From NCBI RefSeq assembly GCF_963853765.1, contig NC_088858.1, forward strand, positions 12,400,001 to 12,464,000: a stretch of DNA of 64,000 nt, read 5' to 3'. Positions within the stretch are counted from its first letter, which is position 1, and each line of letters opens with the position of its first letter. Shown piece after piece: positions 1 to 21,411 of this stretch. The stretch comes from Magallana gigas (Eukaryota). The notes beneath the pieces are model-generated. The model saw nothing but the letters and a program-made list of their open reading frames with translations, made no database searches and was not told the origin of the DNA. The position numbers were made by a program, and so were the translations under genes.

Positions 1-1970
1 TGTATAGGACACTTTCTTTTTATTGTTTCGCCTTTCATTTGATACCATGATGTTGAAAGCACATGGAGTCTTCTCGGTCGTTTTGGTCAGCGTGTACTTG
101 CAAACGCCCATGAAGTGAATTTTCGACCCGTCGTACGTTTTGTAATGTGGGTCTCCGGATGCACGACACACGCAGGCAGCTGAAGCAAAATGAACACTTT
201 CATTGATTCACTGGCTTGATTTGCATTGTTTGTGGTCATTTTTCTGAGGAATACAATACATTCATAACAACATGAAAAGGAAAAATAAGATATCATTCCC
301 TCTTTCGGGTAAATTGACACAATCAATCCAAAAGGTATATTCGAAAATCTTCTATTCTGATATCCTCTTTGTGAAGTGCAAGCACAGGCTTTGCTAGTTT
401 TAATGGACAAATAAATTTGGAAACAAATGAGATTACTGTATGAAGCATTCACCAATACCAGTTCAAATCAGTGATGGGGTATTCGTAATCAGCTGTAATC
501 GATTACAGGTTGCTGAGTAATCAGGAGTAATCAGTAATCATCCGTTTTTAGGATTACAAGTAATCGTAATTTAATGGATTTCTCTTTTAAACGGTCCTGT
601 AATCATGATTAATTTCTGATTACTCTAATGATTACAATAATAAAAAAAAATACGTCAATTCATTGTTATTACAACTATTAGTTGAATAAGGTTCAATTTT
701 AGATATGGTTTATTTACTGTTATCAAAACACAATTCACATCTATTGCTATGTACCTAATTGTCAAATGTATGCAAAACGGGAACACACTCTATAAGATCA
801 TATCCTTAACACAGCAATGATATATACCACCGTGTTCCTAGTCAACCAGTTTATTAATTGTGGTAAAAACCTATTCCAATTTATAGTCTAAGTTCAACAC
901 ATATCTATACAGTCAATTGTGTGTTTTGTATTTAATCTATATCGGTAAAACTGTGTCTTATTTGATGAATGAATTAATGTCCTTAGCTTTTTTTTTTAGG
1001 AACATGGAGATAGTCAAAATGTTAAATGATGATAAAGTGTACTAAAGAAGCTTGTAAAAATTGATGACTTGATATCAGAATTGATACTTCTGTTCAAAAT
1101 GCTTTTTTCTTTCCAAAATATTAAATATATAAACTAAGAATTAAAAAAAAAAACAGAGAAAAAACACACTAAATACATGTACTGGTAAAGTAATCGAAAG
1201 TAATCATAAGTAATTATGATAACAAGAAGGAAAAGTAATCTAATGTTAACGATTACTTCTAAAATTGGATGTAATCAGCTTGTAATAAATTACTTTTAAA
1301 ACCCAAAGTAATTGTAATTTAATTGATTACTTTTAAAAATAATCAACCCCATCCCTGCTTCAAATAAAAATCCACGTTTACAATCCCCGTAGTTAATGCG
1401 ACTTTCATTCGAAATGCAATAAGATATGAATATAAATACACACGTGTACATTTTAGTTTGTGTGAACATGGAACGATGATTCGACAAACCTGTGCAGCCT
1501 GTCTTTGGGTTTCCGCGATAGCCTTTCTTACACCGACATTTGCGGCCTCTCCTTTTCGGAAAGGCATTGGCACCGCATTTCAGGTTGCAGACTACAATGT
1601 CAACGATTGCAATCTCTGTCACAAAACCTTTGATGCACTTTAATATCTTAATATGAACAAAGTGTAGCACAAGCAGCGATTTGCTTTTAAGAGATCGAAA
1701 CAAATCAAAACTTACACTTCTCTTGATAAGTGACTTTGAAAACTCCGCGACATCCCTTGCTTACTTCCACCTGCCACGCTCTCTGCTTCTTTATTAATTT
1801 GAAAGACTTGTTCTTCTTGCAAGAACTTGAGCCAGGATTTTGTTCGACAAGTCCAATTTGTACATTTTCTACATCCTGCGGAATATTCGGTTTGCAGGTG
1901 GAAGGAACAGCCTTCCCGTTTTTGATTCTGCTGGCACAGGATATTTGCCTTTGCTTTCTTTGGCATTTTT
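1..1970 (-). CDS. Module 5 (partial): lectin-like 1970-1716, EGF 1591-1490, first VWD exon 179 to <1
   Basis: Splice sites read directly; truncated by the window edge. Confidence 0.85.
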
Positions 1971-19900: not shown

Positions 19901-21411
19901 GTCAACGATTGCAATCTCTGTCACAAAACCTTTGATGCACTTTAATATCTTAATATGAACAAAGTGTAGCACAAGCAGCGATTTGCTTTTAAGAGATCGA
20001 AACAAATCAAAACTTACACTTCTCTTGATAAGTGACTTTGAAAACTCCGCGACATCCCTTGCTTACTTCCACCTGCCACGCTCTCTGCTTCTTTATTAAT
20101 TTGAAAGACTTGTTCTTCTTGCAAGAACTTGAGCCAGGATTTTGTTCGACAAGTCCAATTTGTACATTTTCTACATCCTGCGGAATATTCGGTTTGCAGG
20201 TGGAAGGAACAGCCTTCCCGTTTTTGATTCTGCTGGCACAGGATATTTGCCTTTGCTCTCTTTGGCATTTTCCTACAATCAAATTTTTTGAGTCATTGAA
20301 ACAATTGAAGGGATGTTTTATTTGTTTCTGCATTGCCTTAAGTATACAATTGTTGCTCTTATTCTTAATATTAAGCTGTGTAGAATGAATAACGTACTTA
20401 AACATTGTTGCGTAGGATTTCCTGTATAACCAGTTTTGCATTGGCATTTTCCTCCTTTATTTCTATTTTCTTTCCAAAAGGCATTGCGTCCACATTTCTT
20501 TGAACAGTCTATTTTACAGTAAAATTAAATTAATGATTTATAAATGTAACAAATATGTTAGAATAGTAAGTAGATTGTTATTTTCTACATGCATTAAAAA
20601 CTTACTAGTTTTGCGAAATGTAATCAGGAAAACTCCTCTACATCCTTTCCACACACTCAACATCCATTTCTTTTTCTTTTTAACCAATCGAAATGATCTT
20701 CCATTTTGGCAAGGTTTTGAGTCTCGGTTAACTTTTACATTTTTTACCTTTAAGTCTATGATATTTTCGGGTATATTCAGGTTACACAAAATAGGGAAAC
20801 CGGTGCCATTGACTCTTTGTATGCCACAACTGATATTCTTATTTTCGAATTTGCAGGTTGCTAAAATGCATTAATAATGAATTCACAAGACTGAAAAAAA
20901 AATTAATAATCTCTCCAAGCATTACGCTTTTCCATTAGATCATACAAAATATGGTGAGACTTATGAAAATATCGATTCCTAAAGAAAAACATCCCAGTTT
21001 ACATATCAAACTTTAATTTTGGAATATACAACCCATGCTAGAGGTTGCATGCTTTCTAAAAGCGCAGCGATTTTCACACCTCCATTATGCTAGATATCAA
21101 CTTCCTGTATATAATCAAATATGCCATTTAGAGCAAAACGAACGTTGAAACAATGGCATTGTTTTGCAAAAGTGACAGTATAAAAATCAAAAGCTTAATT
21201 GTCATTATAATCATGAGATATCTTAAAAGGTAATTTGTGATGCTAGCTTTTACATCATATCGACAAAAAATTATGTGAAAAGCGTTACAAACACTAAAAG
21301 GTCCTGAATATTGTGATCTACTGATTAGTACTCACTTAAACAATGCGACAATTCTAGATAACAAAGGACAACTATTGCCAGGACATAGAATAGGTATCGC
21401 CTGGTTTCCAT
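1..21411 (-). CDS. Large secreted multi-module VWD-C8-TIL protein (FCGBP/zonadhesin/mucin-like) with lectin-like and EGF domains; 5' portion only, continues past the left edge (~2,460 aa inside the window)
   Basis: Spliced model with GT-AG introns and compatible phases: signal-peptide exon 21411-21336, lectin-like exon 20860-20606, EGF exon 20508-20398, then repeated 7-exon modules. The VWD starts with CxASGDPHY, and C8 and TIL cysteine patterns (GCPNTC...GCQCKKGYV...CVPYSECGC) are visible in the ORF track. Confidence 0.88.
469..1357. mobile_element. hAT-type MITE (889 bp), copy 1 of 5
   Basis: TIRs CAGTGATGGGGT...ACCCCATCCCTG; 8-bp TSD gttcaaat/cttcaaat (7/8); subterminal GTAATC/GATTAC repeats. 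An 8-bp TSD with CAG termini is typical of hAT elements. Confidence 0.8.
2524..5955 (-). CDS. Module 4: lectin-like 5955-5701, EGF 5576-5475, VWD 4163-3922 and 3822-3497, C8 3408-3095, TIL 2991-2780, TILa 2674-2524
   Basis: The VWD, C8, TIL and TILa junctions were read here and the lectin-like/EGF junctions in the module 5 copy; all are GT-AG. Phases 1-1-1-0-2-1-0-1 close the frame. Exon lengths 255+102+242+326+314+212+151 = 1,602 nt = 534 aa. Confidence 0.88.
4453..5342. mobile_element. hAT-type MITE, copy 2
   Basis: Same TIRs, TSD and intronic position as 469-1357. Confidence 0.8.
6509..9941 (-). CDS. Module 3: lectin-like 9941-9687, EGF 9562-9461, VWD 8148-7907 and 7807-7482, C8 7393-7080, TIL 6976-6765, TILa 6659-6509
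   Basis: Same exon set as module 4, placed by offset (3,985-3,986 bp). Confidence 0.85.
8439..9328. mobile_element. hAT-type MITE, copy 3
   Basis: Same TIRs and position; left TSD reads gttcatat. Confidence 0.8.
10495..13924 (-). CDS. Module 2: lectin-like 13924-13670, EGF 13545-13444, VWD 12134-11893 and 11793-11468, C8 11379-11066, TIL 10962-10751, TILa 10645-10495
   Basis: Same exon set as module 4, placed by offset; private substitution DVNKSRF. Confidence 0.85.
12425..13311. mobile_element. hAT-type MITE, copy 4
   Basis: Same TIRs, TSD and intronic position. Confidence 0.8.
15628..15850. repeat. Two-copy 112-bp tandem duplication inside the CACAG element
   Basis: tgcacctgggc...gatatacacaaac starts at 15,628 and again at 15,740. 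Confidence 0.85.
16064..16111. repeat. Imperfect (GA)n microsatellite
   Basis: Direct reading of gagagagaga... Confidence 0.9.
16839..20272 (-). CDS. Module 1: lectin-like 20272-20018, EGF 19893-19792, VWD 18478-18237 and 18137-17812, C8 17723-17410, TIL 17306-17095, TILa 16989-16839
   Basis: Splice sites were located directly or by offset from module 4. ORF-track peptides are near-identical to the other modules, with private substitutions SALCGV and GGTPV. Confidence 0.85.
18769..19659. mobile_element. hAT-type MITE, copy 5
   Basis: Same TIRs, TSD and intronic position. Confidence 0.8.
20398..20860 (-). CDS. Unique N-terminal lectin-like exon (20860-20606) and EGF exon (20508-20398), diverged paralogues of the repeated ones
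   Basis: TTCKFENKNISCGIQRVNGTGFPILCNLNIP...PCQNGRSFRLVKKKKKWMLSVWKGCRGVFLITF, then NCSKKCGRNAFWK...KCQCKTGYTGNPTQQC. Both exons are phase 1-1. The first is 255 nt, the same length as the repeated copy. Confidence 0.8.
21336..21411 (-). CDS. First coding exon: signal peptide METRRYLFYVLAIVVLCYLELSHCL
   Basis: ATG at 21411-21409; basic N-region followed by a hydrophobic core; donor A|GTGAGT (phase 1) matches the phase-1 acceptor at 20860. Confidence 0.8.

Follow-up and report, generated by a model that had tools for sequence, protein, structure and literature searches.

Architecture of the locus

The window analysed here is a 64,000-nucleotide (nt) stretch of the genome of the oyster Magallana gigas (contig NC_088858.1, positions 12,400,001 to 12,464,000), free of any N runs. 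The minus strand of its positions 1 to 21411 carries the 5' part of one giant gene, similar to FCGBP and zonadhesin, that runs past window position 1 and whose closest public models also come from M. gigas. Read from its 5' end, the gene consists of a signal exon, a divergent exon of the DUF3011 type (A'), an EGF-like exon (EGF'), a first A exon, and then the repeated units. An earlier reading of this DNA, made without database searches (hereafter the sequence-only reading), had described modules in which a lectin-like exon is placed before an EGF and a VWD-C8-TIL-TILa cassette. This order is present in every unit: the A exon, encoding ...ISCASRIKNGKAVPSTCKPNIPQDVENVQIGLVEQNPGSSSCKKNKSFKLIKKQRAWQVEVSKGCRGVFKVTYQEK, is followed by exons for an EGF-like domain, for VWD, C8, and TIL, and for a segment in the position of TILa.

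The coding sequence begins with an ATG at 21411 (minus strand), reading METRRYLFYVLAIVVLCYLELSHC..., and a tataTAAg lies approximately 35 nt upstream of it. Exon 1 (21336-21411) encodes a hydrophobic leader resembling a signal peptide, METRRYLFYVLAIVVLCYLELSHCL, and ends in a GTGAGT donor. Judged by eye rather than with a predictor, the N-terminus has a basic n-region followed by a hydrophobic core of 13 residues, and this signal-peptide-like leader would send the protein to the secretory route. It is followed by A' (20606-20860, 255 nt), which encodes a divergent repeat of the DUF3011 type with 36% identity to A, and by EGF' (20398-20508, 111 nt, five cysteines). The signal exon and the splice sites of this 5' region, including those inferred for EGF', come from reading the sequence alone, while the RNA contigs described below cover the repeated unit.

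Unit 3 serves as the reference for the repeats. Its A exon (9687-9947) has 261 nt, or 87 codons, delimited by RNA contigs, and encodes a single DUF3011-type repeat with five cysteines. It is followed by an EGF-like exon of 102 nt, also with five cysteines (9461-9562), by VWD in two exons (8148-7907 and 7807-7482, together 7482-8148) with a GDPH motif near its start, by C8 (7080-7393), by TIL (6765-6976), and by a cysteine-rich exon in the position of TILa or the E module (6509-6659, from RNA joints). Unit 1 has an A exon of 255 nt (20018-20272, by sequence reading) and a remainder at 16839-19893 (EGF 19893-19792, VWD 18478-18237 and 18137-17812, C8 17723-17410, TIL 17306-17095, TILa 16989-16839), for which coordinates were set with sequence anchors and offsets carried over from unit 3. 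In unit 2, the A exon of 261 nt (13670-13930) was given its acceptor by analogy with the RNA-supported one, and the remainder spans 10495-13545 (EGF 13545-13444, VWD 12134-11893 and 11793-11468, C8 11379-11066, TIL 10962-10751, TILa 10645-10495). Unit 4 comprises an A exon of 261 nt with both joints in RNA contigs (5701-5961) and a remainder at 2524-5576 (EGF 5576-5475, VWD 4163-3922 and 3822-3497, C8 3408-3095, TIL 2991-2780, TILa 2674-2524). The start of unit 5 occupies positions 1-1976 (A 1976-1716, EGF 1591-1490), with a VWD that begins at 179 and leaves the window; the whole gene part within the window thus comprises the signal exon, A'-EGF', and units 1 to 5.

The window holds at least five tandem genomic units with a period of 3983-3986 bp (approximately 3985 bp). 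This period was measured with seeds and blastn, as Tandem Repeats Finder, whose longest period is 500, is blind to it; a seed taken from one unit recurs at 17, 4001, 7986, 11972, and 18316. In blastn comparisons of units delimited by successive A exons, the identity is 99.3-99.9%, introns included. Identity of this order would mean that the array was amplified very recently, that it evolves in concert or undergoes ongoing gene conversion, or that its assembled copy number is uncertain. Because the copies in the window are nearly identical, we counted the five as one observation. The protein had been described as very rich in lysine and arginine, and this is confirmed by the composition of the 536-amino-acid (aa) unit: 12.1% Lys, 5.2% Arg, and an isoelectric point (pI) of 9.25, together with 7.5% Cys and four N-glycosylation sequons.

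The intron between TILa and A of unit 1 carries an insertion of 2357 bp (14335-16692) that blastn does not find in the other units. Its ends are long inverted repeats (for example, 14541-14607 and 16511-16577 are 96% complementary), the foldback-like termini consist of 11-bp subrepeats (CTTTAAGCCAC/GCTTAAAGGTG), and its interior holds a tandem duplication of 112 bp (15625-15848). From these sequence features, it looks like a non-autonomous transposon of the foldback type.

The A exon is included in the transcript

We compared one genomic unit (5697-9680) with four sequencing runs. The RNA library X5 gave contigs, as did X6 and X8, which we took to be RNA by guess; the raw polyA run X20 gave only 6 reads on the unit. 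The three runs that gave contigs belong to three studies, and the contigs of all three carry the same joints, which together cover every joint of the repeated unit. These are 6509->5961, from TILa to A; 5701->9562, the wrap-around joint from A to EGF; 9461->8148, from EGF to VWD; and, further along, 7482->7393, 7080->6976, and 6765->6659. Every excised stretch is GT..AG on the minus strand, and the order in the spliced unit is A, EGF, VWD, C8, TIL, TILa. In two contigs of 1638 nt, the end overlaps the start (1608 + 30), and therefore the period in the mRNA is 1608 nt, or 536 codons, A exon included. This replaces the figure of 534 aa proposed earlier for the module.

The VWD domain is interrupted by an intron of 99 nt (7906-7808) that is in frame and open and recurs at the corresponding position of the other units. 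A six-frame reading passes through this intron (7808-7906) and therefore includes 33 false residues.

The acceptor of the A exon in the RNA contigs is the upstream AG of a TAG-TTGTAG pair, which gives an exon of 261 nt (e.g., 9947-9687 and 5961-5701). The sequence-only reading gave 255 nt for this exon in each module. This length does not apply to the repeated units for which there are contigs, but it holds, by sequence, for A' (20860-20606) and for the first A (20272-20018), where there is no AG 6 nt upstream and hence no tandem acceptor. The tandem acceptor lies at 9941-9950 and 5955-5964, with counterparts in units 2 and 5; were its downstream AG used, the exon would have 255 nt and stay in frame.

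The 261-nt A exon is in phase 1 on both sides, such that skipping it would preserve the frame. Transcripts skipping this exon had been named in advance as an observation that would speak against a lectin-bearing protein. The contigs of the three runs retain the exon and include no joint from TILa to EGF, although contigs can hide rare isoforms, and the read depth on A equals that on the remaining exons. The A exon is spliced into the mRNA, and its inclusion is the main form in the RNA contigs.

The A exon encodes a divergent DUF3011-type repeat

The proposal that this exon is of DUF3011 nature is upheld by sequence comparison. The top Pfam family is DUF3011 for A (E-value 0.057, 13.8 bits), for A' (0.028, 14.8 bits), and for exon open reading frames (ORFs) of relatives, P0003 (0.0017, 18.7 bits) and P0004 (0.00053, 20.4 bits), all of them under the Pfam cut-off of 25 bits. 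An exhaustive search of 1.84 billion proteins with a profile built from A and A' gave 9 matches at E <= 0.001. Five are of the A type (P0001-P0005), including two fragments from the same species (P0001 and P0002) and XP_062614735.1 (P0005), a zonadhesin-like protein of Saccostrea cucullata in which the A domain stands between TILa and the next VWD. The other four (P0006-P0009), among them a protein of the gastropod Lymnaea stagnalis (P0006), are bona fide DUF3011 proteins that pass the Pfam model at 65-318 bits; their library-wide E-values in our search were 1.7e-7 to 7.5e-4. No other family appeared among the nine. A word search with the A exon retrieved only a fragment from the same species, the length of the query being limiting, and a search seeded with a DUF3011 alignment gave DUF3011 proteins of bacteria and of Bulinus, with the Aplysia egg lectins AKL and ADEL not among them.

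In comparisons of profiles by hhalign, the five A-type sequences match the 11 repeats of P0007-P0009 with a probability of 97.1% (E-value 5e-11, 65 columns). The alignment pairs C11, C25, C50, and C73 of A with the four invariant cysteines of DUF3011 repeats, and GCRGVFKVTY with GCRGxFEVTY; A thus carries the signature of the family, i.e., four cysteines, a tryptophan, and a C-terminal GC[RK]G.F.V.[YF] strand. Since P0007-P0009 had been chosen by their likeness to A, we also used a second set of 50 repeats from 15 proteins, including proteins of Xanthomonas and Pseudoxanthomonas annotated as 'DUF3011 domain-containing', which was seeded with an alignment of P0006-P0009 and is tied to A only indirectly. 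The probability was 95.9% against all 50 repeats (E-value 6e-9, the four cysteines aligned) and 94.7% against the 35 more distant ones (6e-8). In the reverse direction, hidden Markov models of the DUF3011 repeats, searched against 1476 ORF pieces of the window, matched A and A' exons alone, with nothing else at E <= 10. The profiles of the 50 repeats and of the first set match all six A/A' exons, and the one of the 35 repeats matches the five A exons and misses A'. Taken together, these sequence comparisons support the assignment of the 85-87-aa exon as a divergent DUF3011-type repeat.

The A-type domains have an invariant fifth cysteine, two residues into the exon (KC or TC, e.g., 9939-9937), and the EGF-like exon beside A (9562-9461) has five cysteines rather than six. 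This pairing of odd numbers suggests a disulfide between the two domains.

Structure predictions are in line with this assignment. AlphaFold2 gives an all-beta model for a single A sequence with a mean confidence (pLDDT) of 83, and a model with a pLDDT of 95 for a true DUF3011 repeat supplied with its alignment; when matched by the hhalign register, the two models agree in the order of their six strands. A PDB-wide sequence search with A gave one chance-level row, a mucolipin (E-value 0.6), and Foldseek of the A model against the PDB gave nothing under an E-value of 0.1. Among the 20 top weak PDB neighbours of A, 15 recur for the true DUF3011 repeat over the same chain ranges. Phage tailspike C-terminal domains, the foot of the R2 pyocin fibre, YPM, and PirA are common to both lists, as are H-type lectin domains (discoidin I and Helix pomatia agglutinin; 2w94, 2ccv, 3wmp). 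The models thus lend indirect support to one fold shared by A and the DUF3011 repeat; they give no fold assignment and are silent on function.

Conservation in other bivalves

A' and A, which belong to the same gene, are 36% identical, and relatives from other bivalves are 30-43% identical to A, with the cysteines and the tryptophan invariant throughout. It is this retention at such distances, and not the resemblance between copies in the window, that we take as evidence of constraint. In the metagenome contigs L001-L004, A-type exons with 37-43% identity to A lie within tandem VWD/C8/TIL units of approximately 3.1-3.2 kb. An A exon inside tandem VWD/C8/TIL units is thus found also in S. cucullata (XP_062614735.1) and in two bivalve-like sets of contigs, and by sequence the architecture has been kept in several diverged bivalve-like lineages. 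In L001 (7860-8929), the A-bearing units end after two copies and are followed by a different VWD/TIL unit that lacks an A exon, which may be the end of the array.

The scaffold resembles FCGBP and zonadhesin

A Pfam scan of the window, done exon by exon, places VWD (E-value 1.6e-27, 97-104 bits), C8 (2.3e-8, 34.6 bits), and TIL (5.3e-11, 42.9 bits) above their cut-offs. The EGF-like exon has a C.C..GY.G.....C tail and matches EGF families with E-values of 0.03-0.2, the best being EGF_3 (0.031, 15 bits for a cut-off of 28.5). The last exon has no match when scanned alone. In a spliced context, taken from slices of the public model P0035, TILa is found across the TIL/TILa junction with full coverage of the profile (E-value 0.013, 16 bits for a cut-off of 27). 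Hence, the Pfam check suggested with the sequence-only reading bears out VWD, C8, and TIL above cut-off, whereas TILa, EGF, and DUF3011 (the top family, yet at 13.8-20.4 bits) stay below.

In every unit, VWD starts with GDPHY.TYDG (in full, VCRASGD|PHYKTYDG), with cysteines at -6 and +134 from the proline of GDPH. Human FCGBP reads VCRAQGD(477)|P(478)HYTTFDG, its GDPH motifs are all cleaved, and the resulting fragments are joined by a disulfide between C472 and C611, at -6 and +133 (PMC8267560). By this likeness, the oyster GDPH would be an Asp-Pro autocleavage motif with tethering cysteines of the FCGBP type. Since the tethering pair is matched, any fragments produced by an FCGBP-like cleavage should stay disulfide-linked.

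The earlier description of a mucin-like scaffold stands as regards the VWD-C8-TIL assembly, the building block shared with gel-forming mucins and VWF, but not beyond it. The unit has no stretch rich in proline, threonine, and serine (PTS; S+T+P 18.8%), and none is found as an exon in 1-21411 or in P0035. For lack of a PTS region, we rejected a gel-forming mucin. Moreover, the N-terminus is arranged as signal-A'-EGF'-A-EGF-VWD and not as the D1-D2-D'D3 of mucins and VWF; neither a D1-D2 propeptide logic nor a CTCK knot was seen within the window, the C-terminus being outside it, and the polymerisation implied by the earlier polymer-type label is thus not supported. By sequence, the scaffold is nearer to FCGBP and zonadhesin, which are secreted proteins and likewise have many tandem VWD-C8-TIL-E/TILa assemblies and lack a PTS mucin region; the GDPH motif and the near-equal spacing of its cysteine pair add to the likeness with FCGBP. 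The oyster gene differs from both in its strongly basic units and in their 99% identity, introns included. To our knowledge, vertebrate FCGBP and zonadhesin as described have neither a DUF3011-type domain nor an EGF-like knot between the assemblies.

A previous study of C. gigas described five proteins, EKC18864-EKC18868, named 'IgGFc-binding protein (zonadhesin-like)', as consecutive models with VWD, EGF, and TIL, and as pediveliger-specific candidates for a larval mucus or adhesive (Foulon et al. 2019, PMC6337334). They could be one giant tandem gene that was split in the old assembly. That they are the gene described here is a lead only.

Comparison with the DUF3011 lectins

The Aplysia egg lectins AKL and ADEL are the only DUF3011 proteins with a known activity and bind galacturonic acid and galactose; AKL, which binds galacturonic acid, consists of three repeats that each resemble DUF3011 (PMC5484111). 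The oyster A domain shares with their repeats a length of approximately 60-85 aa, a predicted all-beta nature, four cysteines, and the C-terminal GC[RK]G.F.V.Y strand, and all belong to molluscan proteins, secreted in Aplysia and probably so in the oyster. There are also clear differences. AKL and ADEL have approximately 218 aa, made of three contiguous repeats and nothing else, whereas the oyster gene has one repeat per 536-aa unit of a giant VWD protein. A is more basic, has two loop insertions and the fifth cysteine, and scores below the Pfam cut-off. A mature protein made entirely of two or more contiguous DUF3011 repeats is not what this gene encodes: its repeats are single and split by EGF-VWD-C8-TIL-TILa stretches of 449 aa.

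Possible function and alternative explanations

We favour, with somewhat more confidence than doubt, a secreted giant of the FCGBP/zonadhesin type in which a DUF3011-type repeat in each unit displays a weak glycan-binding site. The chain would open with a signal peptide and the single divergent pair A'-EGF' and continue in nearly identical units of 536 aa, in which one divergent beta-sandwich of the DUF3011 type (A) precedes an EGF-like knot and the VWD-C8-TIL-TILa assembly. Every unit would offer one weak glycan-binding site on a strongly basic scaffold (pI 9.25), and a dozen or more such sites may be carried by one chain, given at least 5 units in the window and 14 in the public model P0035. 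The product could be an extracellular, disulfide-stabilised rod or net that cross-links or traps glycans, possibly of an acidic kind, within mucus or an adhesive secretion, and that might agglutinate microbes. We regard such a glycan-displaying rod or net as the most likely working because DUF3011 is the sole domain of the AKL and ADEL lectins and because the scaffold is strongly basic; it is by analogy with these lectins that we infer sugar binding by A.

Several observations weigh against this proposal. All A-type sequences score under the gathering score of PF11218 (13.8-20.4 for 25 bits), but the Pfam model has 197 positions and spans approximately three repeats, and hence a single repeat, as here, is hardly able to reach it. 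The conservation between A and DUF3011 is mostly structural (the four cysteines, the tryptophan, and the GC[RK]G.F.V.Y strand) and is silent on a sugar site, and in place of the DUF3011 motif S-[FWY]-G, A has S-F-[KR]. The repeats stand singly, 449 aa apart, where known DUF3011 lectins and bacterial proteins have 2 to 6 contiguous ones. The best PDB scores of VIA-align, with a Z of 6.0 for A and of 5.0 for the true DUF3011 repeat, are at the level of noise, and the activity of A cannot be judged from structure because DUF3011 has neither a solved structure nor a known binding site. The link to AKL and ADEL was made indirectly, via the Pfam family, the L. stagnalis and bacterial proteins, and the published description (PMC5484111). 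Finally, P0035 (6720 aa, 14 units), a public model of the same gene family that clusters with M. gigas entries, skips A in 9 of its 14 units, a related model of Ostrea edulis (P0030) has no A, and rare isoforms may be hidden in the contigs.

Some of these points would fit an A domain that is homologous to DUF3011 and whose sugar binding was lost or never present, acting as a rigid disulfide-stapled spacer or a protein-binding module in an otherwise ordinary FCGBP/zonadhesin-like matrix or adhesion protein. The restriction of common residues to structural ones, the single rather than tandem repeats, the related O. edulis model that works without A, and the fifth cysteine, which next to a 5-Cys EGF-like exon suggests a structural role through an inter-domain disulfide, all speak for it. 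However, the only DUF3011 proteins of known function are lectins (PMC5484111), oyster lineages retain the domain with 30-43% identity and the gene itself retains it twice, and its weak fold neighbours, although at noise level, are largely sugar-binding sandwich domains; we thus regard a mere spacer as possible, though doubtful. The skipping seen in gene models raises another question, namely whether A is a cassette exon, such that isoforms carrying few A domains or none may prevail in certain tissues and lectin valency may be set by splicing. The junction ...SCRRK-V-CNLKC... is found in most units of P0035, P0031, and P0037, the latter two being without A in every unit, and the exon phases permit the skip. 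Yet the contigs of three runs from three studies pass from TILa to A to EGF round the full circle of 1608 nt, and the depth of A is that of the other exons. Moreover, P0031 has the marks of an unsupported prediction, since it starts out of frame in an A exon and breaks off inside an intron, and nearly identical repeats make model building unreliable. P0035 keeps A in 5 of 14 units, four in the 261-nt form and the fifth cut at the model start, and its units alternate as 449, 449, and 536 aa, an alternation suggestive of an artefact of gene modelling where repeats are 99% identical. We consider such cassette use of A unlikely.

The two other explanations concern the nature of the protein and of the domain. 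If the GDPHY.TYDG found at the start of VWD in every unit were cleaved, as are all GDPH motifs of FCGBP (PMC8267560), the protein could be a self-cleaving polyprotein that frees many 536-aa lectin units. The pair of cysteines at -6 and +134 matches the tethering pair of FCGBP (C472/C611, at -6 and +133) and should keep the fragments linked; we rejected a freely released polyprotein on account of this conserved pair and give such a product very little credence. Even less probable is a chance resemblance between A and DUF3011 among small cysteine-rich beta domains. The Pfam scores below the gathering cut-off and the fold searches without a match above noise would allow it, but it is largely refuted by the library-wide E-values for the four bona fide DUF3011 proteins, no further family being among the matches, by the hhalign probabilities of 95-97%, including those with repeat sets that had not been picked by likeness to A, and by the reverse profiles, which match only A exons within the window.

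The glycan-displaying giant may be carried further, in a more speculative version. The protein could be a self-cleaving yet tethered giant like FCGBP, binding acidic glycans of the uronic-acid type with more than 12 sites, and gluing mucus, a larval adhesive, or microbial or algal polysaccharides, with a valency that frame-preserving skipping of A could tune. We hold this fuller version as tentative, and rather improbable in all its parts.

Implications for DUF3011 and bivalve lectins

Both building blocks were already known, and the gene is not a new kind of system; their combination escapes standard annotation. In public databases, models of this gene family go under the name 'zonadhesin-like', Pfam thresholds miss the A domain, and the models drop it from most units. 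Surveys of bivalve lectins that rely on matches to PF11218 would hence not count it. DUF3011 is a large, mostly bacterial family of 'unknown function' whose sole functional anchor is the Aplysia egg lectins. That a giant of the FCGBP/zonadhesin type expresses it as a constant component widens the known use of the domain in animals, and gives a testable idea of how a mucus or adhesive protein of oysters might grip glycans.

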